NCBI GenBank assembly: GCA_013115145.1
Contig: JAAPAO010000088.1
Span: 1 to 64,000, forward strand
Origin: Perkinsus chesapeaki ATCC PRA-425
Taxonomy: Eukaryota; Protista; Perkinsozoa
Reading direction: 5' to 3'
DNA: 64,000 nucleotides
The position numbers were made by a program, and so were the translations under genes. The notes below the pieces were generated by a model. It was not told the origin of the DNA. It worked only from the letters and a program-made list of their open reading frames with translations, and did not search any database. Below, piece by piece: positions 8,064-59,900 of this stretch. Positions within the stretch are counted from its first letter, which is position 1; every line of letters starts with the position of its first letter.

Positions 8064-8303
8064 GGTCAAGCACTAGCAATCGACAACCAGCTTCCCCGTA
8101 GCGAAGGTCGCTCACGGTCAAGCACTAGCAATCGACAACCAGCTTCCCCGTAGCGAAGGTCGCTCACGGTCAAGCACTAGCAATCGACAACCAGCTTTCC
8201 CGTAGCGAAGGTCGCTCACGGTCAAGCACTAGCAATCGACATCCAGCTTTCCCGTAGCGAAGGTCGCTCACGGTCAAGCTCTAGCCGACGCAGCTTTCCC
8301 GTA
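8064..8303. repeat. 52-bp tandem repeat, 4 full copies plus 1 degenerate
   Basis: Unit GGTCAAGCACTAGCAATCGACAACCAGCTTCCCCGTAGCGAAGGTCGCTCAC starts at 8064, 8116, 8168, 8220 and 8272. Confidence 0.95.
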
Positions 8304-33700: not shown

Positions 33701-35207
33701 TCTTGATGAAAGCGAAGATTCCACAAAGCCCATCTGCGGATAATCCCGACCAGATTTATACCAGCATCCAACTACTCACATTTTCCATCACTAAAATCCC
33801 ACAAATGGTTGACTTTGGCAAGCGAATTCTCTACAATGTGCAATTTCCTATAAATCCACAAAAATGCGCTTGTTTTCCTCAAAGATTGGCTCAATCGTAA
33901 AGTTGATGACTCAGTACATTTTCTGATCCAACATAAGACATTTCTGTCCACATCTAGGATGATCAATGCACCGTCGAGGGCACGATCTCATATGCCTATA
34001 AAACAGTACCTGATAATCACATAGACGTGTAGACATCCCATCCAATACGACTGATAGGAATATATAATTACGGTCGGCACGTTTCGCGCTAACTGTCAAA
34101 CGATAAAAACAGTAAATGTAGAAATCTCCGCCGATATCCCCGGGCGGGGTTCCACGACCCTTCGAAAATTCAGCAGGTCGATTCAAACATCGATTTTTTG
34201 GAACAGATATTTTATAATCACCTGGAAGAACCATAACGACCTACGCGAGTGGATTTAAAATTGTAATCACAAATCGCTTCGCTCCGCTGCTATTACTGCT
34301 GACTGGCGTAATATAGTAGACTTCCTGCACCTGCCAAGTTCTCTCAACTCCGTTGGAAGTGATCGAGGATCCATCGTCGCTCTGAAAAATTGGGATAACA
34401 TTTCCTTAATTTTTCAGAAGCCACCGAGTCCGCTCTAATATATCGAAGGTTCAATTGAACGGGAGTGACATTCGGGCCAATTGAATTTAAAACAAACAAT
34501 TTAAAACGTGTACAATTGCCGTCGATTCTTCCTGCCGCGTCGAACGAACACACCGGCAGCAGCAGAGTTGCAAGATTCACCGATGGGCAAATCGGTGTAG
34601 AACCGATTAAAGATTTTTTTCGGTTCCTGCGGTTCTGGAAGTTTTATATAATCCCAGACAAGAGTGCGCGATGAGCGTAATATTTCCAAGACTCCTGAAG
34701 TGCTGGCATATGTATTTGGTTGCCTTCGGTTAAGCCGTGAAATTCACCAACGAAATGTTAACAGAAATTTTTTTCCTGATGGCCGGTGCGGAAGTCGACC
34801 GTGCTTCTGGCATTACGAAAAGATATTCATAGATTCGCACCAATGCACTAGAAATCGTAAGACGTGGAGAGAACAGAAATTTCAATTTTGGTTGAGAAAG
34901 TACGACACAGAAGATTAAGTCTTCGATGGTGGAACTAATTTCAATCGAAAAAGATACTTTTGAGGTTGATTGGCGTACCACTGGCCGAAACTCGAGAGTT
35001 CCACAGGAGCAAGTTTCCCATTTAATAATCCAGAACTCCAGTCTTTGAAAATACTCCTTAACAAGCAGATGCATCCTTGTTAACCTCCGAAGAATCTTTT
35101 AACCTCTACCAGTAGTACCCCCTATGTAAATTCCCGCCGAGGTAGTCCGCCGCAGCCGCTCGGTCGTCATCATAATCGCGATTCAACACGGAGATGTCTC
35201 CTCCCAT
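30790..35207 (-). CDS. Large multi-exon cyclin-box protein, cyclin-Y-like; 3' end uncertain
   Basis: Spliced core (~32530-32980) AAVYACRFAENVCMRDWNWRIIVAISVFLACK|VWEDY..LKKLEAFVLADVLQWNVNIKSHE resembles the cyclin-Y NWxRIV..LAxKVWDD..LE.FL..LQFNINV pattern. Putative start MGGDIS. Confidence 0.55.
33154..33307. repeat. 17-bp minisatellite, ~9 units (GTAATAGGAAATAAAAG)
   Basis: Directly visible; intronic in the cyclin-like gene model. Confidence 0.95.
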
Positions 35208-35521
35208 TATGGACGAGGAAACACCGTCAAGGACGAGTCTGGTCACCAGACTTTTGCGGGGCGCGTGACAGGATAGACGTTGAAGAAATGCAAGATCTTG
35301 CAAGACTATCAAGTGGCGTTTGTCGCGTGTCAATGGAGCGGCAAGGCAGGAGTATCTAGAGATGCAGAGTGTGCTTGCTCACGCACAGACTTGTACGCCA
35401 ACGAGTGTAGGTATAGCTATTTCAGGCAGGAGTATCTAGAGGTTGACCGTGCAAGATACAATAGAGGTGAAGTTGAGTGCATGTCAGATTTTTCGTATAC
35501 TTTGGTGGGCACTTTTTGAAT

Positions 35522-38500
35522 ATGTCTGGTGTCGGCACTAACAGCTCAGTTGTCCCAGACCATCAGCCTGGTGGAGGCCCACAAGGATGCACTCTACTTA
35601 TCTATTACGATAAAGGGGTGCCACCAACACAACAGGAACTACAAAAGCGTATTGAGAATGTAATAATGTTATTTAGTCAACAATCCTGCCAAACACATTT
35701 AATATTTTCGGAACGTTTTTTTCTATTTAAAAATCCCCTTGGTCCTAGATGTGAGATAGACCTTGATTTCGAGGACATGTTGTTGTCGCTGACAAGGACG
35801 GCGGGCAGCCATTATGCTGGTTAACTTGGTAAATATTGGGCACCTCAATTGTTATATTTATGTACATTATTAGTAGAATTATTTATTCTAATGACATTAA
35901 AATATGCATTGTTAGTTTATATAGCAATACCCGGTATTGGTTATCCATAAATAGGCTAATATATCGCTCTGCGCTTGGCAAGGTTCGTATAGATGTCGAT
36001 TTATTAAAGATTCATATAAAGGTCGATTTGATAAAGATTCGTATTGAGGTCGATTTGATAAAGATTCATATTGAGGTCGATTTGATAAAGATTCATATAG
36101 AGGTCGATTTGATAAAGATTCATATAGAGGTCGATTTGATAAAGATTCACATAGATGTCGATTTATTAAAGATTCATATAGAGGTCGATTTGATAAAGAT
36201 TCATATAGATGTCGATTTATTAAAGATTCATATAGAGGTCGAATTAATAAAGATTCATATTGAGGTCGATTCCAGCTTTTCCGGTTTTTTCATAACTATT
36301 ATCTTTCTCAGGCGTGTGCGGCCAACCAGCGTAACTCAGACAAGTTGATTGCCGTTCTCGAGGAACTGTTGCTGCTTATGATCAATGGCGAGTCATATCC
36401 TAGGTTGCTCATGACAATGATAAGGTAATTTCATGGCGCGCGTGAAAGCATCTCTTAGATACTTTTCGGCTCAGGTTCGTAGTTCCCAAGCAGGATCATC
36501 GTGTAAAGAAGCTCTTAATGATGTAATACCGGCGGACCTTAACTCTGAGTTTCACTGGCGCTTTCGGGCGGTATCGCACTAGCAAGAATTTCAACTGAGG
36601 CGTCCCGTGCCTTAGCATCCCATGCATTATCGGAATAGACGTTGGCTTCCCTCGCTCGTCAAATTTCATCGTCGATTCGTCATAGTAAATACGTTGCTGG
36701 GAGATGACGAACTCTACCGGAATTGGGCGAAGCTTCGATCAAATTCTTGCTCCTTGGGAATGTTCATTGTAAACTGCGCGCGTGAGATGCTGGTTATATA
36801 GTGCTATATATTTCGTACCACACTTTGATGCGATTGGGGAGCTTACCTCGAATGTTAGCTACTGGGAGCTCTGTGAGAAGACTAATGAAGATGGCAGTCT
36901 TAAGGAGGAGATGATTCTGGTTGTCAATGCCCTCAGAAACGACCTTATGCATCCGAATGAATATGTTCGGGGAAGTAAGGCTCTAAGGCATTTTCGTGGC
37001 GCGTGAAGTTGGTTTATAGGTACTTTGCGATTGCTGTGTAAACTGAAGTATTATCGGATCCTCGAGCCGTTGACTGAGGCAATCCTCCGTAATTTAACCC
37101 ACCGTCACAGTTACGTCCGGAGGAACGCGGTGATGTGCGTGTAGGAATTCTGATAAGGTATTTCGCAACTGTTTGAGGGTCTGTTGGTAGGTACGCTATA
37201 GTGAGCACTTTCGGGGAGGAAATGATGCCAACAGCTTCCCAAGAGGTGGAGAATTTACTATTGGTAGTGGTGCATCGCTCCGCTAAGATTTGAGTTTTAT
37301 TTGGCGTTTTTAGGTTGAAGGGGACTTGTCTACGAAGCGTAATGCATTTTTGATGTTGATGTTGACGCCACATAATGAGGAGAAGGCTATGAACTATGTT
37401 TTCTCTATGCAGGTGAGTAGCAGGAGGAGATTAGTCACCTTCTGGGAAATATTAAATTCGCATGAGTTTTGCATAAGCGACGCTTTCCTGGGTTATATGC
37501 GGGACATTAAGTGTCGCTTGTGTAGAGTTAGGTTATAGGAGGGGAAGTAAATTCCCCTGATTCCAGATGCTTTCATAACCTCTACGGTCTCCCTTGTGAG
37601 CCGAGCTTGCTCGAATGCATGGAGGGGATGCATGAGACTTTCGAATCTATAAGATAGAGGCTTTTTAGTTTTACTATACATAACTTCCAGACAATGTATT
37701 GTGGGAACGCTTCTTTAACGGATACGTTCTCACTGTTCATATTTCAGGACCAAGTGGCTACATTGGGCGACATCTGCCAACTGGTTATTCTGGAGTTGAT
37801 CAGGAGAGTTAATAAACACCATCCTGAGATGAAGGGACAACTTTTAAAGGTGAAATAGTCTAGTTGGTTATACTGTTGGCATTTGAATCGTACAGTCGTT
37901 GGTTCTAATCCTAGGAGCGTCGTTTTAGGTTGTATATACTTTGAGGGAAGCTCCAAGCCCAGCAGTGCAATATGAAACCGCTAACACTTTGGTTATTTTA
38001 TCGAAGTCCCATGTTGCCATTGGAGCCGGTAAGCCTCTTGCTGTTTCCCGTACGTCAGTGGGTCGGTGCCGAGAGTGCCGTTGGGTAGCTGTGGAACGGA
38101 TGATTGATTTTTACGAGAAGGATAGATCGTAGTATCCATTGGCGAGGCCAATGATTAATGAGAATCATAGAGTGCGAGAAGGCATTTTAAAGGAACTTGG
38201 AGCATATTTTATATCTGGGTTAAATCTCCTTACATCCAGCATCTGCTCTAGCATCACTGGGTGCATATATATTAGATCTACCTTTGCAATGTAATCTCCG
38301 CGCTGCTGCGTGATTGAAGTACGGACGGTGAATTCCTACAGCCTTCCTTTTACGTGTGCAATCAACTGTTGTTTTGTTTCAGCGGCCGAGGCTTATGTGA
38401 ATCTTGTTATTACACAAGCTGATAATAACGTCAAGCTCATCGTCCTCGATAAGATAGATCTCCTGAGGAAGCGCTATAAACAAGTAATAGGCTTTATGCA

Positions 38501-41500
38501 TTGTGCCATCGCGAGCCATTTGTATTGTAGGCGTTGGAGCCATTGGTGATGGATTTGCTCAGGGGCCTGTCGTGCCCTGCTGTGGAGGTTAGGAGGAAGA
38601 TTCTAGATATCTGCACACCACTGGTAGTAATCTTGTTGGGTACATTCGGGGCTACTGTTTATGAGGAAATATATTTTTTGCGTGGAAGATGCATGGTTGA
38701 ATGCGTTGGTGGGCCGCATGGCGCTCGAAAGCTTGCGGTGATATAGTTATCGGTGGTGCTCAACTTTGACCGTGTCCGGTCTGAGTCATCATTGCATTTA
38801 CGATAATGTGAATCCAAACAGGTGCAAGATATATATTTATTATGAGATTCATATTATTAGCTAGGCCGTCGTGACGAGGAGGCTAGGCGCGCGAATTCAG
38901 TTACTTAATTTTTTCCAACCAGTAATAAATAGTTCGGATTTTTCAGGTCAACAGTCGTAACATTGGAGACGTTGTTGGCCTCCTTAAAAAGGAGCTTGTT
39001 AAGACTCAGGATACGAGTACCTCTGAGGGCAACACTGAGGTGCTGAAAAGATCCTTCCTAAGTGGAGCGGAGTGAATGTCATCATCATTGTCAGTATCGT
39101 CGTTTGCTTATTCGAGCACTTCACTTGTGCACTATACGCGTTGGTGATGCTAGCTATGCCAATCAAGTGGTGTCGGTGCTGTTGGATATACTTACTGAGC
39201 AGACGGACGCTAAAGCATCTGGTAGTAGATTTGAGAGGGTTGTGCAGTATTATAGCCGCATATAACAGTATCTTATTTTAATATAATCTTTATGGGTATT
39301 ATATGTATGCTATTAGTAGTGCCAATTGTATGTGATATAATGGTAAAGAGAATAAACTAAGTATGATAGTGGAGGCGGATGGAAGGCATCTTTGCGCACT
39401 GGGAATATTTCATCTTCAGATTCGGCGGCAGTTGCGGCTGATATTGTTATGTTTATAAGGGAGACGATTATCCGACATGCGCAGCTTCGTGAGAGTATCT
39501 TGACCAGATTGGTAATGCATGGGTTAACCTTGGATACTCCAAGAGAGTTGTTGCATTTCAGTCGGAGAGTTTACCCGAGATTCGACAGTCTCGTGTTATT
39601 AGAGGCTGCCTCTGGCTGCTGGGAGAGTTCTCGCCAGGTAAGTCGTCCTTTGCGCATGCGTGCAGAATTATTGTGTCGGTGATTGTAGACTGCGGTAAGG
39701 AGGTGTCCCAGAGTGTGCTGGAGGGCATCGTTGAATGTGTGTCACCGTTGCCGATCAAACCGAAGGCTGGTGAAGCCGAGAAGGAGGAGAAGCCTGAGGC
39801 GAGTGCGGACACCGGTAGGGCTCGGTTGATGGCGAGGGAGAGGATCTTGTTGTGAGATAAGTGTGGTCTGAATTCGAGAGGGGCAGTACGAGTTTTTGAT
39901 TGGATTACATCAATGTTGTCCCGCACGTGGGTGAATGGAATCGTTGAGGAAAAATCTGGATATATTACTTTTCTCGGGAAGATTGTTTTCGATTGTCGCA
40001 GCAGGAAGTGAATTTTTATTTTGTTAGGTACTAAGGTTACCACTAGAACGGTTGTTTTGGCCGATGGTACGTATGCGAACGAGACAGTGTAGGTTTGAGG
40101 GGATCTTAGCTTGAAGGTTGCACTTGTTAATTTTCAAGATACGATGGAGGTGCAGCAGCTGAGGAGGATAAGAATGATAAGGACTCGAAGACACCTATGC
40201 GTAAGGAAGGGTATCTTAGGTCCATGCGTGCAGGATACGAAATAGTTGAACTATATGTGATGTTTGCTCACACTTTGGTTATGTTAGGAATTTATTTTGG
40301 TATGCGTTTTAGGTAAACTCATCGCGGAAGGAGATTCTTTGTTATGTACCATGGTGGGAGTGACGGCCACTAAGTTGTTGGTTAAAGGAGGATTACGTAG
40401 GCTAGACGGAGCGAAGTTTTTTATTTATTTCTCAGTTGGAGACTGCCCTGTTTCTCTGAAGAATCAGGTCTGTTTTTTATTGGCCAACTTGGTTAAGCTT
40501 TGCGAGAATACATCAAAGCAGGAAGGTAAGCGTTAAACTTGACCTGTTTTGTATCTTACGTGCTTCAACCTGAGATACTCTTTGATGACTTAGGTGCTAC
40601 TTATGCGGACTCATCTGCCGGTGGTAATATCAACGGCACCGTCACAGACACTGATGCGGTGAGCCGCTTGACCCAGTGCGTTCGGGCCATTATCACTTCT
40701 AATAAGAGCGTAAGTCCCGGGTTCGATCCTCGCACTTGTCATTCTTCATGCATTTATATCTCAGATCGAACGCAGTTGCAAACGCGAGTGGGGCTCTGGT
40801 AACGATGCTCGGAACGCTCTCAAGCAGGTATGGAGGAGATCGCGGGTTCGAATCCTGGGAGGGGCATTTTATTAGGTGTTGGAAGTGGAGGCGGGCGAGG
40901 ACCCGGCTTATGCTGATGACGGCAGTTCGCGAGAAACCAGCAAGCAGCCCGATGATCTTATTTTCTTTAGACAACTCAAGCCAGGTAGTGTCCTGGTGGA
41001 TGAGCGGCTGGTTGCTGTGTCGAAGGTCGTGGGTTCGAGTCCCAGGTGAGGTGTTTTTCAGGCGCTACTGTCGATGATGATGGTGATGACTCGGGATGTG
41101 ATCTATTCCAGAGTGATGACAGTTCCATGATAACTGCATCAACCATGGATGGTTCATCTGCTAGCGAACTGGAGTCTGGCGCGCTCTTTGCTGAGAGACT
41201 TGACAAGTAAGGAACAGTGGCTACTGTATAGCTGCATTCTCTCTTCCGAACGTTCCTTGGATGTATTGGTTGGTCCTGCACATGGTCACCGCAGGAGTAA
41301 TTACAGGGGCTCCACTCGACCTATTCAGAAAACCCAGATTAGCTTATTTAACCGGGTTTTGGGTTCTGGGTTTTGGGTTTTCGGGTTTTCAAGTCTGTCC
41401 AGGGTTGGTGGGATTTGATGTCACTATCTCGTGTTTAGGGTATTGCCGATGACTGGTCTAGCGGACCCAGTGTATGTGGAGGGCTTCCTCAGAGTTCATA

Positions 41501-43250
41501 GTTTCGACCTGGTAAGGGCGGAGCGAAGCGATTACTCTTTCGCATTTTTCGTGCACAGGTTTTGGAACTGAACGTATTTAACCGCACAAATACGACTTTA
41601 CAGAACATCCAAGTCGAGCTCAGCACTCAAGGTAAGCAGTGGCGGTTGATGTTATCGCAGAGGGCGCACGCTCTGGTGATCGATTTTAGGTGACTTGAAG
41701 ATCGTTGAAAGGCCGCAATGCGTGACTTTGGCTCCGGGGGCTAATGCTGTGGTTTATGCCACCATTAAGGTGTCCTCTACAGAGACTGGTGTGATTTATG
41801 GTTATGTGGCTTATGATATGAAGTCTGCTGATGATAAGGTAAGGGAGGTTGAAGCGTGCATTTCGCGGAATGAAAGATACTTTTGTTCAGGAATCTTTGG
41901 TGCTTAATGAGCTCCATGTTGATATTTTGGACTACATTGAAAGGGCTTGGGTGAACGAGCTCAACTTCAGGACAATGTGGTAGGAATAATCTGTGCTTCG
42001 CTCCGCCTGCGAAATCGGCATTTTTCGTAGGTCTGAATTTGAGTGGGAGAACAAGATCAACATCACTAATACAAGTGTGGGGCCTCGCGAGTTTTTGGCG
42101 AACCTTATGGAGAACACTAATATGAGTATAGTCGGCAGAAGAGAGGTAAATGATCTCAGCGGAGCGAAGCGATTCATGTTTTACGGTTTTTAGGTTCGAG
42201 TTGGTGTGAAGGCTGGGGATGAGAATCATACGGCTAAGAAGGTAGTTTTTGGTAGGATGTCCAGTATCGCCAATTTCAGTAGAGATCAGTACTTTAATAA
42301 GGGAGAAAAATGGTTTTTTATCAAGTATTGAAATTCCTGTCACCAATTGTAAATATTGTCAACTAAGAATATATTACAGTTTAAAAGCTACGGGCATACT
42401 TGACGACGCAGCTGCGAGGGGTGCCGGTGGATGCTTTCGAGTTTCCGTGCGCGATATGTAAAACGTCGACGAGACACGTGATGTGCATTTGCCATCTCTG
42501 AATAGGCTCATATGCGTATGGCGAAAAGCATCAGATCGGCCTTGACGGTAGAACTCCAATAGATGTGTTAAAGTGGTCAATTATATATATTCCTTGTATA
42601 TGTAAAATAGATGGGATGGTATTACAGAGCAGTCCTGCGCTGAACCTGTAGAGCTTCACGGAGCTTCATTTATGAAAACTCCTATATAGTATTGCATATC
42701 TTAGAGTAATGGCTCTTATGATTAGTTTGCCGGTGGTGCAATAGTGTGGAGGATAATGTAGTGTATAGCGGTAACCGTTTAAACACTTTAATAGAATGCA
42801 TGTCAACATTGGACTTGGGAAGCTGGCTGGATTTCACAGAATTGTTTTTAGGCACAAGTGAAGGCGGAAGTTGACAGGGAATTGAACGAGTCGAGTAGTC
42901 TTTCTAAGCTTTTAGGACCACAGTCGAAGTTCGTGGCTGTTAACTTGTAATAATTGGGAATCTTGCGAGTGCGATGGAGTATCTTTGTGACGGAGCTTGA
43001 CCTTAGATACGCCCGTTCTATCTTCGGGGAGGATGCTTTGGCCAATGTTTCTCTCGAGAAGAATCCAGATGGATCGCTGAGCGGATCGGTGCGCATCCGA
43101 TCCAGAACACAGGGCATTGCGTTGAGCCTCGGTGACCGCATTACGCTCATTCAAAGGAAGCAGCAGCAAAAGCAAAATCAAAAGAAGCCGACGGCTAAGC
43201 GGAGCGAAGGAGTGAAGGCTGCTGCTGCTGAGGCACCACAGCTGTTGTAA
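35522..43250 (+). CDS. COPB1: Coatomer subunit beta (beta-COP), >25 exons
   Basis: [50 protein letters not shown]|[77 protein letters not shown]. Confidence 0.95.
35981..36270. repeat. 27-bp minisatellite, ~10 units, in the first COPB intron
   Basis: Unit (AT)AGAGGTCGATTTGATAAAGATTCAT; lies between COPB exon 1 (..KRIEN) and exon 2 (ACAANQRNS..). Confidence 0.95.
37850..37928 (+). pseudogene. 79-nt COPB intron resembling a whole degenerate tRNA gene plus terminator
   Basis: TAGTCTAGTTGGTTA (A-box) ... GTCGTTGGTTCTAATCC (B-box-like) ... GTTTTAG acceptor; its removal gives GQLLK|VVYTLR. Confidence 0.55.
40985..41061 (+). pseudogene. 77-nt COPB intron resembling a degenerate tRNA gene
   Basis: TGGATGAGCGG (A-box-like) ... 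AAGGTCGTGGGTTCGAGTCCCAGG ... TTTTTCAG. Confidence 0.6.
41354..41389 (+). repeat. GGGTTTT-type heptamer repeat (x5), G-quadruplex-compatible
   Basis: GGGTTTTGGGTTCTGGGTTTTGGGTTTTCGGGTTTT at the 5' end of a COPB intron. Confidence 0.8.
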
Positions 43251-44299
43251 ATGGCGGGAAATTTTGTGGCGCGTTTTTATCGGTGAATGAAGGCGGGCTA
43301 TTTTAGGTGAACAGTTTCAATGGAGAGTGTTTGGCTTTGTGTTGATGAGGTTTTCACAATGGGATAGCTAGAGGTGTCAGAATAATAGGCGGAGCGAAGT
43401 TTTTCTGGCAGTTTTTTGAAGGAAAGATTGTCAATATTGCACGGGATAATATGTCAGTGGCGATCAGCCCGCAGACCGCAATAGGCCCGGCGAGTTATGA
43501 TGCATTGGAAAAGGAATATAAAGAGCATGGAGGGAAGGTAATGAAGAGGGGTGGCGGATGGATAGTGGAGGGGTGATTGATGGTAGATGGTAAAGGAAGA
43601 GAGACGGTCTAGTGGCAGCAGCGGCAGCAGTCCTTCTAGCTCTTATTTGGACGATTTGCATCCCAGTCAGGTAGGATAGAGGTGGTGGTCAGATTTATCT
43701 GGGTTCCTTATGGTGAGTTGGACTTCGAGTCGAGGAAATTGGTCATTATAACTGTGATAGTCGATGAATTGTTTTACCCCGAATGGCCTCACTTGCATCT
43801 GTTTTTTATCTGTTGTATGGACACAGGCCAACTGTTCGGTTATCTTATAACTCTTGCTTTTATAAGAACGTGAAGTAATCTCATTATTCCGACGGCATCA
43901 TCCCAAAAAGTTGTTGAAGGCTGTTGGCTTATTCAACGGAGCTGGATGGGAAATATAATCACCAATAGAGTCAGTGATGACATGTGCGGGTGTTATCCAA
44001 TATTAAACTACTCTTTTTGTCTATAGCCCATGTAAGGATTTTACACACACGAAACGGCTGATCGATTTAGAGTCGTGTTTTCAGTTTTCATTTTAGTACT
44101 CGTGCTTGATATTTCGCTTGACAACGCTCAGTGTTGAGTGCGGAATTGGGAAAATACGAATTATTCTGTTTTATGTATATGGATATCGTAATTGTATATA
44201 ATACAATCTATCTGAAGTCAATAATCTGTTCGTCAATGTGACTAGTAGTCCGTGTCTAGTAGGTCCCTATATGTGTCTATGTACGTGTATGTGTCTAGT

Positions 44300-46114: not shown

Positions 46115-46586
46115 GCTTTATGGTGACCGATGGGGTCAGAAGTGATTGTGTAGAGGAAGATTTGTCTAGGCTCTTTTAACTGTAGAGGTTTCCAGGGAGC
46201 CGTTTTATAGTTGCACCTGAGAAGACTCTGTGAAGTTCGTAATGCAAAGATATTGGGAGATAACTCTACAATGCTGCTAGAGGCAATCGAAGATACATCT
46301 AGAATTCTGGTTAGGAGCCTCGTGTGCTTCCTATGAGCTGGAGTATCTGCGTGTATCATCAGGGGGGGGGAATATCGGGTCCTATGGCAGACTAGGACCA
46401 TATAACGGATTCTTAATTCACTTAGTGTTATTATATCCACTATTTGGGAAGTGTGTGCTTTAGGTAGAAGGTTCGAGTAAGAGCCAGGAGGAGATAAGGG
46501 AGGATGTCGCTGAGCTTGTTCCGGAGGCCAAGGAAATCTTACGTAGCTCAACTTTGGGGAGCGTGGGGTATTGATTTGTTAGACTC

Positions 46587-48752: not shown

Positions 48753-51700
48753 ATGACAACACGATCGAGGGTGGCTGCCAAGTCAAAGCCAAAACCAGAT
48801 ACTGTAGAGGGTCTGACGGAGGAGGATGAGATACTACAGGGACTGGCATTACATGAAGATGAGGAGGAGGAAGAGGAGGAAGAAGAAGTGGTAATAGAGG
48901 GATTTGGATGGGTGGCGGCAGCATTGTATAGTTCACGTTAACAGTTATTACGTTATCATTTACGTTATTAGTTGTATGCATTTTGTTCGGGTTTATATTT
49001 ATGCTGATATAGGCAGTACTATCATCGGCAAGGATACAATGTAGAGGTGGCGACTTGATAATAATAATCTTATATAAATTCACATCTATACGGTCTATGT
49101 ACAATTCCTTATACGTATGTATACATTATAGCACTTCACTGGTTGGAAGAAAATCGAAAGAGTCGCGTAGACGACCTCTAATGAATCTGCTCCATTGTTC
49201 CCGTCAGCCTCCTCAAACTCGAGCAACTGATCTAAGCACACCGGGTCACGTGAAGGAGTCTTTCTTCGGTATTTCGTATAGGGCGGGATATATTAACTAT
49301 AATATCCATTAATGTGTATAATTACTGGTAGCTAAGGAACGTATGACTAAGTTATATCAGTAGATATTATATATAGAAAGTAAGCTCTGATAACTTGCTC
49401 GATCTGTTTCATCGAGTCGAAACAATATTAATATTATTGTGGGATTTGATACTTCACTCGAAAGCCCTCCCCTGTTATCAGTTGGGTCCCCGTAGACTTT
49501 CTCAGAAATTGGTGTTAATTGGTATGTTTCACGTTTGGTTGTCATTCTTACTGTAGACAAGAATGCTGTATATAGAAGTAGCTAGGCTATAGAGTGCACG
49601 CTTGACAATGGATACGCTGAAGCGGACAGTTTGCGGTATTTAGGATGATACCGTTATGGGGGAGATTGTCGAGGAGGAGGAGCAGGAGCGGGAAGAGGTT
49701 GCTGCGCCAGAGGAGGTAGAGGGTGGAGGCAGCTTCCCTGTAGCGGTGGAGGAGGACCAACAACAGGAGGACGTAAGGGAAGCATGCGGGGGTTGTAGTT
49801 TCAACTTGAGCTTGACTTCTATGCTATGAGAAGCTTCGGAATGTTGGTCGCAGCTTGTTGGATAGAAAACTTTTGGAGGGAAAATGCGCGAAATTGTCGT
49901 GTCGTATGGGAAGTAAAATGTTTTGTTATGTGATTGGTGTTTTTAGAGTAATGGATCGGAAGTTGTTTTGGAGGAGAGTCCGGAGATCGACGCCTCGCGT
50001 ACTGGGGAGGCGGGGGACCCGGTAGAGGTGGATGGAGGAGAGACGAGGGAAGAAGAAACCGGAGCTGATGTTGAGTTGGATGAAGAGGAGCAGCAAGAGG
50101 AAGTAATCGAAAGGTCCCTGGTTCGAATCCCGGAGAGGGTATTTTAGGTTGACTATGGAACTGACGTGGTAATGGAGAGCACGGAGGTGTCTGTTAAAGA
50201 GACGCCTGAAAAGGAGGAGAACCCGGAGGTGGAGGCAGAATGTGAAAAACCGAAACCGAAAGTAGGCGGAGCGAAGCGCTATTTTCTCGGTGTTGAAGGA
50301 GTATAATAATTGAAAAATCAAATGATAATAAAATAATCAATTCTGGAATTAGTCGCTAAACATCTAAGATGGTATGGGATCATCGTCACGCGCCATGAAA
50401 TTATTTCAGGGTTTCGTGGAGGAGGAAGACTGCGAAGCTGTAGAGGATGATGACGCTATCGAAACGGTGTGCGAATTTGGGCCGGCCGATTCGACCTTGG
50501 ATACCACATTCGATAGAACAGGAGGGATCATCAGCAGTTATTCTACAGAGGGGTTTCAATATCTCTTAAGTGGTGTGAGAGCTAATGTTGGTGCTAAACC
50601 AGGCAGCAAGAATATATTTGTATTTGAGGTGAGATAGGATGATGATTAGAGGAAGGAGCGGTATGATAATGTTAGGTGAGGATTGTGGAGATGCTTACAC
50701 CGTTGGATGCGCCGAGCTCAAGCCATGCTCATTTGCCTGCTAAAAAGTAAGGATAGGGCGAGCTAACTCTGCAGTACCCGGAGTATCTTCAACGGTTATC
50801 TTCTCTGGACATTCCCCAGTTGAATCATAAGCTTTCCAGTCGAGCCTAAAATTATCAACGACTCTTTCGGTAAAGGATTCTGCTATACAAAGATGTGCAG
50901 GGCAGCTGCGGCTCATGCGTGGACTAAAAGTCCTTGAACAATACCTTGCAACCTGAGTTACGTTTGAGCTCGAGAAGCACACAACTTGACCGTCTTGGCT
51001 CGCGCGGGGTCATTATGGAGGTCAGGTGGTGAACCCCAGATAACCGCTGACGACAAAAGCTTGAAAATTGACCGGAATTTTATATCAAAAATGTTACCTC
51101 CTCGCCACTAGGGCGCACTGTCGTGTGCTGTTTTGAAACTGTGCAGGCACACGTTGAACAGCGGTAAGCTCGGCCGAGTCCCTCTCTCTGCGAAGTGGTA
51201 GAAAATACGCTCTTTAGTGTTGAGAAATTACCGGGATTCCGCGAAAAACATTTTTTCCTTGCGGACGTATGAGCTCATTCGCTTCTTATTCCGTGCACTA
51301 TGCAGGCACACTTTGAGGGTGGGGTTTGGTACTCTGGCTGCTGGGGTGTTGTTGGGGGCACATGAACAGACGATAAGTTTTGATTGTGATGGTGGAATTT
51401 GGGAAGGAAAACGTCGACAGAACCACGGTGGAACGAGATTTGGTAGGCGGAGCGAAGCGATTCAGGAATAGCGGATTTGGATTGGTGGATGATGATGATT
51501 GTTAGGTTTGAATGAAACTGTGGCTGTGGTATTGAACTTGGATGAGAATGCGGAGCATGGTAACACAATATCATTATTTAAAAATGGTGTAAGAGCATGT
51601 GAACCGGTGAAGTTAAATAATAATATAATTGGGAAAGAACTTTATCCGACAATAACATTTAAGAATATTAGAATTCAAGCTAATCTTGGATATAATAAAG

Positions 51701-54700
51701 ATGATAATAGAATAAATGACATCAGCCCATTTGGTGGATTATTACTTTCATTACCATTTAAGATAAGATCATTCCAACAAAGTAGTAAAAATGATATTTC
51801 TATGAATCCGCGGTATATAAATAATAATAATAAACCAGCTGAAGCTGTTATGGTTATTGGTTTACCGGATGAAGGGGTATTTGATTATGTTGATTATATT
51901 ATTAAACAGAATCCATATAAATATGTTGAACTATCAGAAAGGACTATGTTCGATTGGTAACATCACCACCACCACCATCGAACAATCTTCGGCGCCACTT
52001 CTTCAATAGGTTGAAAAAATCCGGATTAAAAACCCTTCGGAGGACCGGATTAGGCTCGAACGATCGTCCAGCCCACCAATATGGTGTAAAGCCTCTAGAT
52101 GTCCACACGGGAATGATCAGGCAGCTTCGAAGGTTCTTGGATAATGCTCAGCACGAGAGATCTGTGGTAGGTTGGGGAAGGAGGGAACGGTACTAGCGTA
52201 CTTGGCATACACCTACTGCGAGTGATGTATAAATTCAAGATATACTGGCCTATTTAGCGGTGGCTTTCACATGACTGTGATACATTTCAAAATTAGTGTT
52301 TCCATTCGTCGAAATGCAACAGTTATGGCAAAATACCTGATTTGTATAACAGTTTAGGTCGCACTGTATACCTAGTCTTTGGGGCATTAGTAATGGCGCG
52401 AAAATTTAATTTTTAATTTTTGATGTGACTCGTTACGAAAATTGCAGTTGAAGAATCTTGGATAGGTAACACGGTGCTTGGTAGAAAGTTACGTGGTGGG
52501 GGTTTTCGCATCAAAAGAAAATTGTCTCGAGAGAAATCTTCCTGGGGATAATTGAGGACGTAATTGAAATGTATTAAGATGAAGCGTGCGCTGAAGCCGA
52601 GGATTTTTTGTTATACTTTTCCCTGTGCCTTCCCGCTTTGGCCTGCTGTTACCCTTTTCGTTCAGTTGCATGTTGAAATTGAACGAGGGCTCTCGGCAAC
52701 CGAGAGGAAGAAGCTCATGTCGGATTACACCACAAAGAAACGTAAGAAAGGGTCAGTTGGTGGATTTGGAAAGTGCTGGTGTGTCAGGCGTGGCGGTGGT
52801 ATGCGTTGGGCGACCAGATGAGGGTTATCTGGACTACACTAGAGGGTTGGTGAGGGCTGATTTGGAGAGGAAGAAAGGAACGAAGGCTAGGGCGGAATAT
52901 AAGAAGAAGCTTACTGAGTTTAATAAGAAAAAGGCGGAGAGAGAGGCACAGAAGAAGCGTAAAAATATAGGCTACTTGCCGAGTGTGTTTTTCTCCTTTA
53001 ACTGCATCACTTGTTTTTCCTATCTTTTATGTGTGTTTGTACTCTTTGGCTTATTTATTTAATTTGCCTTGTTCATCATACTGTATATTCCTAAAGTGTC
53101 ATTGGTTCTGTGTAGGTGAGTCTCTAATGGAAGCAGCTGCTAAAGCTCGTAAGGATGCAGCTGAGGAAGCAAGGCAGAAGAGGCAGGAGGCAGCGGCGAG
53201 GGCAGCAGCTGCTAAGAAGGCAGCGGAGGCTCGGACTTCGGGAGCAGGAACTGGAGACACAGTGAGCCCGGTGAGATTATTGACGAGATCGATATTCCAT
53301 TATAGTATTGGTAAATAATGTGGGCCAAGACCTCTCCCACTGTTACACCCACCGCTATCCGGACGGCGTTTCGCTGGCTCGAAATAATGTCCAAGTCCGA
53401 TAGACATTTGTTAGTTAACATACTGTGATTATTGGAAAGGTTAATGGTAGTGTTTTTAGACTGCTGGAGGTAGCGGCCATAGCGTTGGTGGTGCGGAGAT
53501 GGGCGCTGATGGTGGGGAAGAAGCTAGTGGAGAGAAGAAAGAGGAGGAGGAGCGTCAGCCGCAGATGCCTGACGTAGAGGTTACTGTGGAGGAGATAACA
53601 GCTAAGATGTAATAGGAGGGGAACGTTGGGACTGGAACCAAACCCATCAAGTGCTGAGATATCTGTCGGCAGACTTAATTTAAGCTGACTTTAGCCTAAG
53701 AACAGTCTTCAACGGGTGAGAGATGTGAAGATCTCCAGCTCGACGGAACTATCCTCCTCCGCCGGCGACATACTAGCCAAACCCGTTCGAGTATCACTTA
53801 CTTCAGCGTCATTCACTGCTCATCATGATCATCGTGTACATGTAGCTCTTCAAGGATGCTACCAATCTTGGAATGCACAAGACAGAAAATTTTCATCGTT
53901 TTTTCGTACGACTCTCCGCTGGAGGGCAGTGTTGAGAAAAGCAGGTTTTTGCTTTTAGGTCGGGCAATGGTCGTTTCCGGCAGCTCTCTCTGCCTGACAT
54001 GACCCACGATGCGGTATCATCGTCGTATCTGCGATTTTCGCTGCCGTCACCAACGGATGAATTAAAGCCTGGAATACCGGTATTTAACGAAATTAGATTT
54101 GTGTGGGATGAGGAGGAGGAAGCTAGAAGGTGGGGGGGGTCTGAGGGGTCAAGAGTAGCGGGAGAAACGGTATGAGATTTCACACAGTGAGAGCGTAAAA
54201 TTTTCGACCTCTCTGTGGTGCGACCGACTGCGGTTTGAGCATGCAGTGGAAAATCTTACACAGTTTTCGTATCCGAATGAGTGTCGATTTGGGGGGATCA
54301 GAATGACGTAAAAGCGGCAGGTTTCTCTGTGGAAATTTTTCGGAGGTGAGAATGGCTGGAGCTAGATGATGACATTATTATTGAACTGCCAACACGCTCC
54401 AATTTGATCGAGAAGTACTATTTCTAAGTTTCTCGGTTATTTGGTAGTTACGCCATAACCATTGGTTTGTTGGAGTTGGGGAACTCAGTTTGAAACTGTC
54501 ATAGAAAAAATTAAACCAACGGGGGGTGCAGGAGTTCGCGGGGTATCCATTTCCGAAAAGTTGGTGGTGTGGGGGACATGGTGATTGTGTGTTAGGTATC
54601 TGTCGGATTGGATTCGCAAGCATAAGATAGTGGAAAAAGTGGCGTCGATAAAGGGGCCCAGTGAATGGTTCACCAAGCAGTTTGAGTCCTGGGCCCAGGC

Positions 54701-56553
54701 TAAGGTGGAATGGAGGAAGCTAGATAGGATGTATAGGGACAAGAAGGGGAGCGAGGATAAAAAGGGTAAGAAATGCCGCAGGGGGGAATCGAACCTGGGT
54801 TCGATAGGTGGGGAAGAGCAGAGCACAGAGGAGGAGGATGTCTGGGCTGCCGAGGACATTGATAATGTCGATGGCGAGCAGACGCCGCTGTACGGTCGAT
54901 TCGAGGCTGTTGACTGGAATCTGCTGGGCACGCGGTTTGAGCTGCACTTGCTGTGTCACTCGTTCAAGAAGGACTGCTCTGATGAGGATATTACCGGAAT
55001 TCATCGGAGCCTGTTGGAGTACTATTATCATCTTTACTTCAAGAAATCTTTAGTGCCGGGACTATGCGGAGCGAAGAGCATAAATGAGTTGCTGGATCGG
55101 CTGGTAACTGACACTATTATGGTTGGAGTTGATGGGGTACTGGCTGCTGTCCACGAAGTCGATACGCCATTCTCGACCTTTGTGAGGTTGACGGAGGCGG
55201 CCAGGAGAGAACGGCAGAAGTTGATAGAAGCAGGGGATAAGTCGGTTGTGTTGGTTGTGAAGGAGCCGGTTGAAAATCATCATCACCATCATCATGATGA
55301 GCGGAGCGAAGCTAAGAGCAATTCGGTGCGAAGGCGGCCGTCTGGTGGATCCAGGAGAGGACCATCGGATGGACGTTGGAGGAGCACAGTGCCGCGTGGA
55401 GGGAAGGGTATGGGAGGAGGAGGAGGACCAAGGCGAAGCGACAGCTCAGGTGGGAAAGGGAAATTGTGTCGGGGAAGTATTTTACCTTTATATATTTTGT
55501 GGCGCGCAGTTTTTATCTTGTCAGTTTCCCTGCGTCCCGCTCCTACAGCTCCTCCACCCCAGGCATCAGCTATGCCGTATCGACAAGCCCCTCCTATGCA
55601 GACAGTTCGCCGGCCACGTTCTCCCCCTCCCCCTCGAGGCCCACCACAACATGTCTCGCATGCCCCTACAAGAATAGACCATCGGCCAGCGGTGCCGCCA
55701 CAGTTTAGTGGTCCACCGGGCCAACCGAGAGTTATCGCTTATAATAGATTCTCGGCGAGTGCGAAGGCTATGCCGAGCCAGCAACAGCAGCAGATTATGA
55801 GACCACAATATGGGACTAATCAGTATAATAGCGGGTAGCACCGCACTGGGGAGATTCTTAAGGATTCACTGTATCTGCGCACTGTGAAGATTTTCAGGAT
55901 TCACTATATCTGCGCACTGTCAAGATTCTTGAGGATTTACTGTATCTGCGCACTGTGAAGATTCTTGAGGATTTACTATATCTGCGCACTGTGAAGATTT
56001 TCAGGATTTACTGTATCTGCGCACTGTGAAGATTCTTGAGGATTTACTATATCTGCGCACTGTGAAGATTTTTGTGTACAGGTACAAGCGTGCGTATCCA
56101 AGCGCATCTTCTTCCACTCTCCCTCCTCCAGCAGCAGCAGCTTCGGGCCAACAGCAATACTATGTTTCCAACGAGAGCCCGAATAAACGCTATAGAGGCT
56201 ATGGGGAAGGAGGAGGAGGAGGGAAAGGAGGGGCATCATGGGAGCAACCTAGAGGTAGACATGGGCTATCGTCACTGCGCCACGAAATTATTACCTCGGC
56301 AGGGTTTTATTTCGGAGTGCCGGTGGCTGTACAGTGTACATGCATTGTTTTGTGAGATCTTCCAAATTCGTAATTTCCTGTCAAATTTTTCCTAGTGTGA
56401 ATCTCGGCGGTTTGACGACCGTCACGCACTTTTCGAGCTTGTTTTCTCCCAACAGGTGGTCCGAGCAATACCGGCAACCCAGGTTACCATTATCGACGCT
56501 TCTCTGGAGGACCTCCTCCCCCGGCAGCAGCTGCCCAGCCTCGACGGTATTAG
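48753..56553 (+). CDS. hnRNP-U-like protein (acidic N-terminus, SPRY-like domain, C-terminal helical domain, Pro/Gly-rich tail), paralog C
   Basis: FQYLLSGVRANVG..FEV, VAVVLNLD..NTISLFKNGVR, VIGLPDEGVFDY..YVELSERT, GSNDRP, EDIDNVDGEQTPLYGRFEAVDWNLL.RFELHLL, FVRLTEAARRERQKLIEAGD. Family assignment is from memory of myzozoan hnRNP-U-like proteins. Confidence 0.75.
55847..56072. repeat. 34-36-bp minisatellite, ~7 units, intronic in paralog C
   Basis: (G/A)TATCTGCGCACTGTGAAGATT(CTTG/TTC)AGGATT(T/C)ACT. Confidence 0.93.
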
Positions 56554-56909
56554 TTGTGATAGAGTTAATAGTATAGACAGTGGTATGTAAGACGTTTTAT
56601 GCACACAAAGGAGGAGACAGTTTGTGTTAAGGACGGGCAGGGCGGCGGGGTCATGTGTGCAGTGGTGGCTCGGGAAATGGCGATGACTGTCGGTTGCCTC
56701 CCTCAGTGGAGGTCTACACTGGTCAGGTGGCGTGAGAATATATACTCTGGGGGAGGAGACGAAGAGGGAAATTTCACGGGGTTTCCTTTCCTGGGCAACA
56801 AGGGTGGATTCTAGTACGGTTCTTCGGGGAGTGGAGGGTCAGGGAAAGTTATTTACTGCTCAAGGCTCCCATCAGTCAATTGTCCACCTACACCTTTCAT
56901 CCCATTTCA

Positions 56910-59900
56910 ATGGAGACCGCCACGGACATAGGTGAAGTAAAGCTGCTGCCAACGCCGCCAGTGGAAGGTCAGACGACCGAGGTGGTGAGTTGGTGATGGG
57001 GAGAGGGGGGATAAGATGGTGGTCAGGCTGCTCAGGCAGCTGGTAGTAATAAGGACGTTGAGATGGCCGATGCTGCTGGAAGCGACAAGCCGACTGAGAA
57101 GGCGGTAGAGGAACCGGTAGGCTGGGTTGGCCAGGGGGCGCGGGTAAATGTGTTTAAGATGATAATATAAAAGGCGATGGGATTGATAAGAAGTGGATGT
57201 GCTGAGGACATTAAAGTACCGTTCTTTGGGCATCTTCTGCATTATCCACCCCATGAACACTGGATTAAGGACATTCCACGTAGTGCACTTGGTGAGGTAG
57301 AAATCCTCTTATGGCCAAAAAGGCTACACTCGTCGAGCGTCGAACAAAATGTAGTGTGTAGATTGCCAGTTGTTAATTGTGATATAAGTGCTTGAGCATC
57401 TGTCGACTCCACCGACCTGGTTCTGTCTGTAGGTGTTCCAGGAGGAGTCTGATTGCGCGGAGGACAAGAGTGCGAGAGTGAATGTGAAGTGCGAATTTGG
57501 CACTTTTGACTCGACCTTGGATACCTATTTCGATGAGACCAACGGCGTCATCAGCAGTTATTCTACAGAGGGGTTCCAATATCTGTTAAGTGGTGTGAGA
57601 GCTAATGTTGGTGCTAAACCAGGCAGTAAGAATATATTTGTATTTGAGGTGAGATAGGATGATGATTAGAGGAAGGAGCGGTATGATAATGTTAGGTGAG
57701 GATTGTGGAGATGTTGTCGGTATTGGATTCCCCTTGCAATGCTCAAGCTCAGCTGCCTCCGCATAGGTAAGACCACAGGGGCACTGAGGATTTAAGGGAT
57801 GGCGCTTCGTTGAAGGAGCGCCGACGAAGGGGATAGAAACGTGGAGAGGCTTGGGTTGTGCGAGAATGAACAAAGGTCCGCCAGGGGCATGGGTATCTTG
57901 GCAGCATCGGAAAACGGTCAAGAGGGGCGTAACGCACGTACCGACGAGACACCTGAGGAAGGTCGGACGCTTCGGCTTGGCGATACACGGTCGGTGGTTA
58001 AGCGGAGGAATTTTTTCATCTAGAGACCGAGAAGAGTCCTTGGCGCATTAAACTGTAGGCTGTGAGATTTGACTTATATCGTAACACATGACAAATATTA
58101 ATGTGTGGTTGTTGTGTTACTGTCTCTGCAGCTTCTTGGCTGTCTCCCCTGCTGCTTTATCTGGAGCCCATTGAGGTGGCTGAGATGGTAAGGAAAAGTA
58201 CGGGGAAGGAAAATGCATCATAATTTTCATTCGTGCGAGGGCACCCCCGGTTGAGCTTTCTGCCTGAGCCACACTAGCACCCACCACGGGCACGATACCA
58301 GGGGAACGCGCCACTATAGAAGCCGAACGGTCACGACACAAAACAAGGAGAGGAAGCAAACGCCATAGCAGGCAGAAACTCGGCTGGGGATGGAGGCCAC
58401 TGAAGATCGGAGCGCTAGACAGATTCGATGAAAATTAATATATAAAGTCTGTTAGTAGAGATGATTAATGTAGAGGAGGGAGATAGTTTATATATATTAT
58501 TTTGAATAGGAATGAACTGCTGGATGTGGCTCTATTCATCATTGCTCAGGCATGTGATGAGAGTTGGCTTCACTACCCTCGACGGTGGTCTGCTATTGGG
58601 GGACTCCGAATTGGGGGTTGGTTTTGATGCTGGTTTGGATAACAGGATGTATGCCCCAGGGACACCAGGTGGGAATCTTGCAATCTTGATAAATCTTGCA
58701 CTTTCTCAATGTGTTCAGCGGCCCCTAGTATAATAATGGGAACTAATGTTGCACCGAATGCTCCCACTGCAGCTTTTGGTGAGTCTTGAAGAAATGCGGG
58801 CGGTGGGGATCGAACCTGCGTGGTCCTGCAGGTCTCAATGACGTGGTGGCTGTGGTATTAAACTTGAATGAGAATGCGGAGCATGGTAACACAATATCAT
58901 TATTTAAAAATGGTATAAGAGCATGTGAACCGGTGAAGTTAAATAATAATATAATTGGGAAAGAACTTTATCCGACAATAACATTTAAGAATATTAGAAT
59001 ACAAGCTAATCTTGGATATAATAAAGATGATAATAGAATAAATGACATCAGCCCATTTGGTGGATTATTACTTTCATTACCATTTAAGATAAGATCATTC
59101 CAACAAAGTAGTAAAAATGATATTTCTATGAATCCGCGGTATATAAATAATAATAATAAACCAGCTGAAGCTGTTATGGTTATTGGTTTACCGGATGAAG
59201 GGGTATTTGATTATGTTGATTATATTATTAAACAGAATCCATATAAATATGTTGAACTATCAGAAAGGACTATGTTCGATTGGTAACATCACCACCACCA
59301 CCATCGAACAATCTTCGGCGCCACTAACTTCTGTTCAGGTTCAAAGCCTCGGCTCTCCGCCCTATCAGACGGGGCCCGGTGGCGTCCAACGACAGGCCGG
59401 ACTTTCTTTTTGGTATTCAACCGATGGACGAAGGCTTCGTTCGCCAGCAGCTGAGGGAGTTTGCGAAAATGCCTCACGGGAAGAAAAACTTGGTAGGCGG
59501 AGCGAAGCGGCTGGTTGCATAGGTTATGGTAGGTTATGGTGGAGATACGAGGAGGGTTGTTGGAGGAGGAAAGAGATAAGATAGTGGAACAGTTCCCAAA
59601 TAGAGAACGTAAGCTACCTGAGGGTGTTGGGTATGTTACGCTAATCGGGATAGAGGGGGGATAGAAAGTAGGAGCAATGGGAACTCGATGGATGGTCCCC
59701 GAGTGGGTTTGTTATCTTCAAGGGCAATTCCTATAGGATTACTATATAATAACCGTCAAAGCATCATACTGATTACCGCAATTCCTATATACATTCTTGG
59801 CGATGCACTACTGAAGTGAATGGAAGTGAGCCTTATAGTGAAGCTTCCTCTTTATAAAGGGAGATGGAGCGTCTGGTAAGGTTGTTATTGATTTTAGGCA

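Follow-up and report, generated by a model that had tools for sequence, protein, structure and literature searches.

In a block of neighbouring genes of Perkinsus chesapeaki ATCC PRA-425, one 11-mer, GCGGAGCGAAG, recurs at many sites and often touches the splice donor of very short introns. This raises the question of what kind of element it is, for which a sequence-only reading of the locus had offered the terminus of a tiny intron-generating element, an intronic splicing enhancer and a DNA-binding site. The window analysed is the whole stretch of 64,000 nt (contig JAAPAO010000088.1, positions 1-64,000).

Occurrence and consensus of Motif C

The 11-mer, referred to as Motif C, is a real motif, with 12 exact copies in the window against 0.01 copies (maximum 1) expected from dinucleotide shuffles. 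All of them lie between 34.3 and 59.5 kb and are spread over four or five neighbouring genes, and there are no exact copies in the first 34 kb of the window; the count, the positions and this empty region had been reported beforehand and were all reproduced. The hosts are mini-introns, one gene leader and three exons, which settles the earlier estimate of two or three coding copies at three. Two further copies carry one mismatch. The sites, by position in the window, are as follows.

34277 to 34287, minus strand: exact copy, sense in what is probably the first intron of a gene on the minus strand
37273 to 37283, minus strand: copy with one mismatch, GCGGAGCGATG, lying antisense in a COPB intron (about 37264-37313)
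40406 to 40416, plus strand: copy with one mismatch, ACGGAGCGAAG, inside what is probably a COPB intron of 39 nt (about 40397-40435)
41518 to 41528, plus strand: exact copy, joined directly to the GTAAGG donor of the 47-nt COPB intron 41512-41558
41996 to 42006, minus strand: exact copy, antisense in COPB intron 41980-42030
42159 to 42169, plus strand: exact copy in COPB intron 42146-42193 (48 nt)
43199 to 43209, plus strand: exact copy in the last COPB exon, reading AKRSE, 49 nt ahead of the stop codon
43389 to 43399, plus strand: exact copy inside the spacer between COPB and DUSP (205 nt), with the DUSP ATG 64 nt downstream
44558 to 44568, plus strand: exact copy, joined directly to the GTAAGG donor of the 49-nt DUSP intron 44552-44600
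50266 to 50276, plus strand: exact copy just behind the donor GTAG (50263) of an intron in hnRNP-U-like paralog 1
51447 to 51457, plus strand: exact copy in intron 51443-51505 of hnRNP-U-like paralog 1
55066 to 55076, plus strand: exact copy in a long exon of hnRNP-U-like paralog 1, reading CGAKS
55301 to 55311, plus strand: exact copy in the same long exon, reading ERSEA
59497 to 59507, plus strand: exact copy in an intron of 40 nt (59493-59532) in hnRNP-U-like paralog 2

The ATG of the gene at 34277 precedes the copy by about 97 nt, and the donor sequence ahead of the motif is GTAATAGCA; the gene model derives from the reading frame only, and the site is uncovered in the other lineages. Protein-level searches used exon ORFs, and the exon hosting the 43199 copy carries the Pfam domain Coatomer_b_Cpla.

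The analysis covered the window and six further loci, and the consensus was determined from 117 kb of sequence of three lineages. The true consensus is RCGGAGCGAWG, often with a CGAT extension. Its core CGGAGCGA occurs 36 times in this sequence compared to 3.6 expected occurrences, and 35 of these are flanked by R...WG, with a single exception ending in ...AA. An interchange of A and T at position 10 accounts for five of the nine single-mismatch copies. With about 22 bits and almost no degenerate copies, the motif is sharp. Information content is at background outside positions 1-12, and the longest pairwise exact extension is 7 nt. A general enrichment of the hexamer GGAGCG was considered and rejected, since 26 occurrences were observed and 26 expected once the Motif C copies had been taken out. 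Literature searches for the 11-mer returned unrelated matches only.

Conservation across Perkinsus lineages

Orthologs in P. olseni were found for all 11 exact copies from 41518 to 59497, eight of them exact and three with one mismatch, and in a third lineage (Logan SRR12548988) Motif C is kept at all seven covered sites. The host introns are present at the same positions in the three Perkinsus lineages. Conservation of the orthologous motif is well above the neutral level: identity amounts to 97% within the 11-mer versus about 39% in the flanks, and to only 0.37 at four-fold degenerate sites between the window and P. olseni. Orthologous introns without the module have no more than 5-9 nt in common between species. 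No third-codon position of the exonic copies (12 of 12 identical) differs between the window and P. olseni, against a background of 0.49 at identical amino acids. Because two other lineages with completely scrambled neutral DNA carry Motif C at matching positions, it is an old signal under purifying selection that arose before at least three Perkinsus lineages diverged. This amounts to strong selection on an 11-letter word within introns of 40-60 nt and at synonymous exon sites in an alveolate parasite of shellfish.

Among the intronic copies, 41518 (L004:3038, L006:7245), 42159 (L004:3678, L006:7889), 44558 (L004:5296, L006:9408), 50266 (L004:8887, L006:13038) and 51447 (L004:9750) have exact orthologs; the block common to the lineages is GCGGAGCGAAGCGAT at 41518 and 19-25 nt long at 42159. 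For the 59497 copy, P. olseni has GCGGAGCGATG, 10 nt from the donor. The exonic 43199 copy is exact in both other lineages with 4/4 identical third-codon positions, and the 43389 copy of the gene leader is exact in L006 and reads GCGGAGCGATG in P. olseni. In the long hnRNP-U-like exon, the 55301 copy is exact in P. olseni and at L005:1477, where the coding sequence upstream is not alignable. Two P. olseni assemblies carry the 55066 copy exactly (at L004:12660 and L002:2050), and the third lineage (L005) has lost it, using other codons for the same residues. Of the one-mismatch copies, 40406 corresponds to ACGGAGCGGAG in the same intron of P. olseni, and the 37273 variant, which is missing from the orthologous L006 intron, may be either lineage-specific or a chance occurrence.

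Reading on DNA or on RNA

A rival explanation is a signal on the pre-mRNA, which would be read by an RNA-binding protein or a guide RNA and would act as an intronic or exonic enhancer for very short introns or on transcript fate. Of the 12 exact copies, eight stand towards the 5' end of a mini-intron, and splicing was observed for one host intron, DUSP 44552-44600, which is skipped in transcript contigs with GT..AG ends; these contigs stem from two small same-species RNA runs whose coverage is confined to DUSP. Furthermore, the three-way alignment shows a conserved T-rich pyrimidine tract 12 nt downstream of the 43389 copy in the DUSP leader, followed by AG. The very sharp consensus would also suit base pairing, although the tolerated change from A to T at position 10 would disrupt it.

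The relation to the splice donor speaks against this reading. The motif directly follows GTAAGG at 41512 and 44552 and GTAG at 50263, 51443 and 59493, so that the fusion described earlier for four sites was found at each of them, with 51444 refined to 51443, and at 50263 in addition. However, this contact is not conserved: at 41518 the motif moves from +7 to +31 and +42, that is, 31 and 42 nt into the orthologous introns, and at another site from +5 to +14; the exact orthologs of 50266 lie 13 nt from the donor. The distance to the donor ranges freely from 4 to 41 nt, the exonic copies are 100-250 nt away from the nearest splice site, and most mini-introns of the same genes lack Motif C. Donor contact in the window may be a by-product of minimal intron length, as a minimal intron would consist of about 4-6 nt of donor, 11-16 nt of motif and 24-36 nt of 3' region.

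Orientation was a further argument for a role in RNA, as 12 of the 14 exact and one-mismatch copies are in sense. This was rejected as a sign of such a role because strand composition predicts a similar bias (6.2:1, compared to 10:1 observed). The antisense copy at 41996 is kept antisense in three lineages, reading ACGGAGCGAAG in P. olseni and GCGGAGCGATG in L006, and varies only at positions 1 and 10, the same two positions at which the sense copies vary. A strand-independent function would find support in the one antisense site conserved in three lineages, but not in the second (37273), which is not conserved. No shared RNA fold of the host introns was found; z-scores range from -2.4 to +1.2 and pairing partners differ. 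Like known splicing enhancers, Motif C is purine-rich, mostly in sense and near the 5' end of short introns, but it is far longer and sharper, conserved in an antisense copy, unconstrained in its distance to splice sites and also present in remote exonic positions. The proposed intronic splicing enhancer is therefore weakened by the conserved antisense copy, the remote exonic copies and a bias explained by composition, and an RNA-level signal is kept as a possible but rather unlikely explanation.

Two RNA partners were also considered. A putative complementarity between the extension GAAGCGAT and the 5' end of vertebrate U2 snRNA was dropped because the conserved core is not covered. A link to the spliced-leader RNA was rejected, as the paper on this RNA in Perkinsus (PMC3101222) contains neither GCGGAG nor GCGAAG.

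Docking on double-stranded DNA is the best reading because the antisense copy is conserved, the strand bias matches composition and there is no shared RNA structure. Motif C is an ancient selected cis-element whose most likely reader is a putative sequence-specific protein on double-stranded DNA, a proposal for which we see about an even chance. The DNA-binding site is thereby the best fit among the three interpretations offered earlier, and it is a candidate based on the conserved antisense copy and the composition-explained bias. The motif would occupy free sequence in a compact genome, namely the intron stretch between the donor and the branch or 3' region, the short leader of a gene and some coding sequence that tolerates it, where the protein would bind. 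Binding may act on transcription or organise chromatin across the COPB-DUSP-hnRNPU gene block. The motif gives a defined oligo for finding the putative factor.

Several points stand against docking on DNA. The orientation argument rests on the single antisense site at 41996, every copy lies in or beside transcribed sequence, which leaves room for an RNA reader, and 22 bits are more than most transcription-factor sites hold. In addition, the host genes have no obvious common function and one copy, 55066, was lost in one lineage. Motif C resembles transcription-factor sites and conserved non-coding elements known from phylogenetic footprinting in being a short word that persists at orthologous positions against a saturated neutral background, in possibly acting in either orientation, in tolerating change at a few degenerate positions and in clustering homotypically across a block of genes. 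Motif C differs from these in that it lies mostly in mini-introns and in some coding exons instead of upstream regions, in its sharpness and in that its factor is putative. To our knowledge, no cis-regulatory code has been described for P. chesapeaki, and a search of the Perkinsus literature turned up none.

Introner and hairpin readings

Introner elements are known from Micromonas, Aureococcus and dinoflagellates and, like Motif C, appear as a recurring sequence in introns of unrelated genes that sometimes touches a splice site. The Motif C copies are orthologous and their host introns shared, as reported above, and similarity among the copies ends after 11-16 nt, with no terminal repeat, second terminus or target duplication; Motif C is not part of a longer repeat. 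The terminus of an intron-generating element was rejected, because the copies are orthologous while neutral sites have diverged, the similarity is short, the donor fusion is not conserved, and copies also occur in exons and a gene leader. 'Introner-like' recurrence in Perkinsus introns is therefore not evidence for intron gain.

A weaker form of this idea is that an old burst of introner or SINE-like elements, perhaps derived from a tRNA, predated the split of the Perkinsus species and left Motif C as a remnant that was later kept for another use. The same short word in unrelated introns, often beside the donor, and tRNA-gene relics in neighbouring introns would fit such an origin, as would the invasive intronic elements known from Amoebophrya, a relative of Perkinsus (PMC7789003). 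We consider it improbable, since in addition to the short similarity none of the 11 exact copies tested is lineage-specific, copies also lie in exons and the spacer, the intron position of the motif varies, and no tRNA was detected at the copies themselves. ARAGORN and Rfam found no tRNA at any Motif C copy, their only match in the window being a tRNA-Ser at 21029-21112. Compared by eye to the B-box consensus GGTTCGANNCC, Motif C agrees at 7/11 positions, and both T54 and T55 are replaced. Identity with a tRNA or B box was rejected on these grounds, and an antisense tRNA 3' end suggested by eye misfits the T-loop pattern.

A DNA-structure element, in which the GCGAAGC core would form a mini-hairpin on single-stranded DNA during transcription or replication, is very improbable: d(GCGAAGC) is a well-known, very stable hairpin with a GNA loop and is present in 9/12 copies, but the closing C is missing in the other 3/12 and in several orthologs, the tolerated GATG variant (five sites) removes the loop A, and CGGAGCGA, the best conserved part, falls mostly outside the hairpin. 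As the heptamer is not kept, the mini-hairpin was rejected as a requirement.

Possibly interchangeable modules in mini-introns

B-box relics and a GC-rich motif occur near Motif C in both orientations and replace it at homologous intron positions. Between the hnRNP-U-like paralogs, one carries Motif C and the other a B-box relic at the same intron position, twice and reciprocally; for example, the intron of paralog 2 (58779-58831) homologous to the host of 51447 has an antisense B-box-like relic in place of Motif C. In one orthologous intron, P. olseni has Motif C and the P. chesapeaki window has the GC-rich word. Motif C occupies the same type of slot, the free part of the mini-intron, as extra-TFIIIC (ETC) sites or B-box relics, and it is conserved across the same lineages. 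It differs from the B box in matching GGTTCGAANCC at 7/11 with both T residues replaced and in showing no detected tRNA-like context.

Tentatively, the mini-introns may be reserved slots for interchangeable DNA docking sites, i.e. Motif C, tRNA B-box relics and a GC-rich E2F-like word. Carrying such chromatin- or transcription-organising sites in densely packed genes could partly explain why the introns persist. We rate this broader proposal as possible and on the doubtful side; if it holds, intron retention would be tied to DNA-level regulation in a compact genome.

A 17-mer, GAGGAAGGAGCGGTATG, had also been pointed out as shared by a DUSP and an hnRNP-U-like intron. The sharing was confirmed, and the number of copies rose from two to three (45103, 50649 and 57669). 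It is a matter separate from Motif C and probably recent, because it is absent from the P. olseni locus and two of its three copies, 50649 and 57669, lie in paralogous introns with identical flanks.

Count, consensus and extent

The exact 11-mer GCGGAGCGAAG (Motif C) occurs 12 times in the window, compared to 0.01 copies expected from dinucleotide-preserving shuffles. All coordinates and strands reported for these copies by the sequence-only reading were confirmed, as was their absence from the first 34 kb. A mismatch search of the window added just two copies with one mismatch, 37273 (-) and 40406 (+), and two-mismatch matches were found at about chance level. In 117 kb from three lineages, the 8-mer core CGGAGCGA occurs 36 times (3.6 expected). 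The true consensus is RCGGAGCGAWG, because 35 of these 36 cores carry the flanks R...WG and the single-mismatch copies mostly show either G>A (position 1) or A>T (position 10). The hexamer GGAGCG shows no enrichment after removal of the Motif C copies.

Beyond the 11-mer, the 12 window copies carry only background information content, apart from weak C/G (+12/+13) and TT (+15/+16), and the maximal pairwise exact extension between copies is 7 nt. Motif C as a piece of a longer repeat was therefore ruled out.

Genes and location of the copies

Exon/intron maps were derived by homology using tblastx against the two other lineages. The gene models are thus homology-inferred, except for four DUSP introns visible in transcript contigs. 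The exon ORFs match named P. olseni proteins with 70-84% identity.

Genes and their Motif C copies (sense and exact unless stated)
Around 34.3 kb, minus strand: unnamed gene; 34277, in the probable first intron
About 35.5-43.25 kb, plus strand: COPB (coatomer beta); 37273 (-, one mismatch), 40406 (one mismatch), 41518, 41996 (-), 42159, 43199
43.45 to about 45.9 kb, plus strand: DUSP (dual-specificity phosphatase); 43389 (leader/spacer), 44558
48.7-56.4 kb, plus strand: hnRNP-U-like paralog 1; 50266, 51447, 55066, 55301
57-62.2 kb, plus strand: hnRNP-U-like paralog 2; 59497

The last COPB exon matches Pfam Coatomer_b_Cpla, and the hnRNP-U-like name is based on homologs bearing SAP and SPRY domains. 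DUSP is named from its HCxxGxxRS signature. The long first COPB intron (35660-36311) holds a tandem repeat (35833-36345, period about 24-27 nt) with one open frame of IHIEVDLIK units.

Nine of the 12 exact copies are non-coding, eight of them intronic and one in the COPB-DUSP spacer. Where two or three copies in coding frames had been proposed, there are three: 43199 (AKRSE), 55066 (CGAKS) and 55301 (ERSEA). The interval 44552-44600, with GT..AG ends, is missing from transcript-derived contigs of two small runs of the same species; the Motif C-bearing DUSP intron is therefore truly spliced. Over the DUSP exons 44300-44552, one of two transcript contigs from a single run equals the window and the other has 10 differences, which suggests a second allele or haplotype.

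All 14 copies, exact and one-mismatch, lie within one 25-kb block comprising COPB, DUSP, both hnRNP-U-like genes and the divergent neighbour of COPB. The copy-free 34 kb preceding it also holds plus-strand genes, and the probability of such an empty stretch at a uniform rate, computed from copy counts, is about 6e-4. Motif C is thus specific to certain genes or to a domain, rather than common to introns in general. Copies are distributed in the same way over the syntenic P. olseni block, with no copy in the 10 kb downstream of it.

Conservation across Perkinsus lineages

The syntenic P. olseni contig JABAHT010000101.1 (loci L004 and L001) covers 38.9-64 kb of the window. For a third Perkinsus lineage, the Logan assembly of SRR12548988 covers 35.5-50.5 kb (locus L006), and locus L005 from the same run covers 53.5-57.6 kb. 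Synteny differs upstream of COPB: about 1 kb separates the LUC7-like gene from the first COPB-matching sequence in L006 (1-2400), compared to about 5 kb in the window (30.3-35.5 kb), where the gene on the minus strand that carries the 34277 copy lies in between.

Each of the 11 window copies at 41518-59497 has a P. olseni counterpart at the orthologous site, eight exact and three differing by one letter. L006 has one at all seven covered sites, six exact and the antisense site reading GCGGAGCGATG. L005 has an exact copy at the 55301 site and has lost the one at 55066, with the same amino acids encoded by other codons. Four-fold degenerate sites show 37% identity between the window and P. olseni; this neutral background is saturated. 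At the eight non-coding sites, motif-anchored identity is 97% within the 11-mer versus about 39% in flanking sequence, where CGAT at +1 to +4 forms a weaker shoulder. Orthologous mini-introns (introns of about 40-60 nt) share at most 5-9 nt when module-free, compared to 11-25 nt in Motif C introns. The three exonic copies have identical bases in the window and P. olseni at 12 of 12 third-codon positions, against a background of 0.49 in codons of identical amino acids. Conservation at orthologous sites and frozen third positions over a saturated neutral background show that purifying selection acts on the nucleotide word itself.

Possible mode of recognition

Of the 11 exact copies in the plus-strand gene block, 10 are sense, as a signal read in RNA would predict. 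However, the sense strand there is strongly G- and purine-rich, and under a zero- or first-order strand model the motif should outnumber its complement 6.2:1 (P of the observed ratio about 0.5), so the observed 10:1 bias is unremarkable. The exact antisense copy in intron 41980-42030 is antisense in all three lineages, and its only variable positions, 1 and 10, are those that vary in sense copies too. This is predicted by a reader of double-stranded DNA and not by an RNA reader, although it is a single site, and L006 lacks the other antisense variant (37273). Interchange of A and T at position 10 is easier to reconcile with recognition of DNA than with base pairing, and the exonic copies are separated from the closest splice site by 100-250 nt. 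An RNA-level signal is considered rather unlikely. Given the composition-explained bias, the conserved antisense copy, position 10 and the remote exonic copies, the best reading, which we give about an even chance, is that Motif C is a DNA docking site.

The Motif C host introns have no shared RNA fold. The GCGAAGC mini-hairpin suggested earlier is not required, since three window copies and several orthologs lack its closing C; a GATG variant is tolerated. A recent intron-generating element, whose terminus the motif had been proposed to be, was excluded for these copies, as the introns and motifs predate the three-lineage split, only 11-16 nt are common and copies also occur in exons and the spacer.

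Fusion of the motif to the intron donor is seen in the window and is not conserved in orthologs: the 41518 motif starts at intron position 7 in the window, 31 in P. olseni and 42 in L006, and the 50266 motif at 5 versus 14 in both. The distance to the 3' splice site is steadier (24-38 nt). This is just the space that branch site, pyrimidine tract and acceptor take up, and in an intron of 40-50 nt the sole free stretch lies directly after the donor.

Motif C lacks the tested defining features of the mini-hairpin, introner and B-box classes and behaves like a phylogenetically footprinted binding site. The word was not found in a relevant context in the literature, nor were cis-elements of this kind in the Perkinsus literature; the Perkinsus spliced-leader paper (PMC3101222) contains neither GCGGAG nor GCGAAG. 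New here are the family of this conserved intron motif, the composition test of strand bias, the conserved antisense copy, the frozen synonymous sites in exonic copies, and module swaps between paralogs and orthologs.

Other intron modules and repeats

Further modules in introns and spacers
40710-40764 and 40828-40875: COPB introns, sense B-box relics (tRNA-gene B-box-like sequences)
58779-58831 and 60069-60113: introns, antisense B-box relics
36425-36474, 60899-60939: GC-rich word (ATTTCGTGGCGCGC-like, E2F-like) at 36428-36442 and 60905-60918
62110-62125, 55480-55500: GC-rich word
43255-43275: GC-rich word, COPB-DUSP spacer

The B-box mini-introns centre on GGTTCGATCC or GGTTCGAATCC in either orientation. 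P. olseni and L006 share the conserved core, except at 58779-58831, where P. olseni holds a different antisense tRNA-like core. The GC-rich word occurs in both orientations in mini-introns; three lineages keep its spacer copy, which directly follows the stop codon of COPB.

Position and phase of the intron preceding the NETVAVVLNL exon are identical between the hnRNP-U-like paralogs; in both species, paralog 1 carries Motif C there and paralog 2 an antisense B-box relic. At the next shared position, paralog 2 has Motif C and P. olseni paralog 1 a B-box-like sequence. In intron 55408-55605, P. olseni has GCGGAGCGATG versus the GC-rich word in the window. These cases suggest that intron modules are exchangeable, which fits mini-introns as slots for a small set of putative docking sites; three cases are too few to establish this.

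The hnRNP-U-like paralogs are near-identical, introns included, at 51499-51960 versus 58813-59286 and 50625-50690 versus 57645-57710, and diverged elsewhere, which suggests recent gene conversion. The 17-mer GAGGAAGGAGCGGTATG, noted earlier in two introns, is indeed shared, but the near-identity accounts for two of its three copies.

Mini-intron 61879-61924 has diverged from its counterpart L004:20006-20059 except for a conserved 18-nt block, TTTCTGACACCTCTAGCT, a further module. Intron 52167-52665 is 499 nt long in the window and about 56 nt in P. olseni (L004:10449-10504), where it has the B-box-like GGTTCAATC. At 8096-8262, a tandem array unrelated to Motif C holds four copies of CCGTAGCGAAG at 52-nt spacing.
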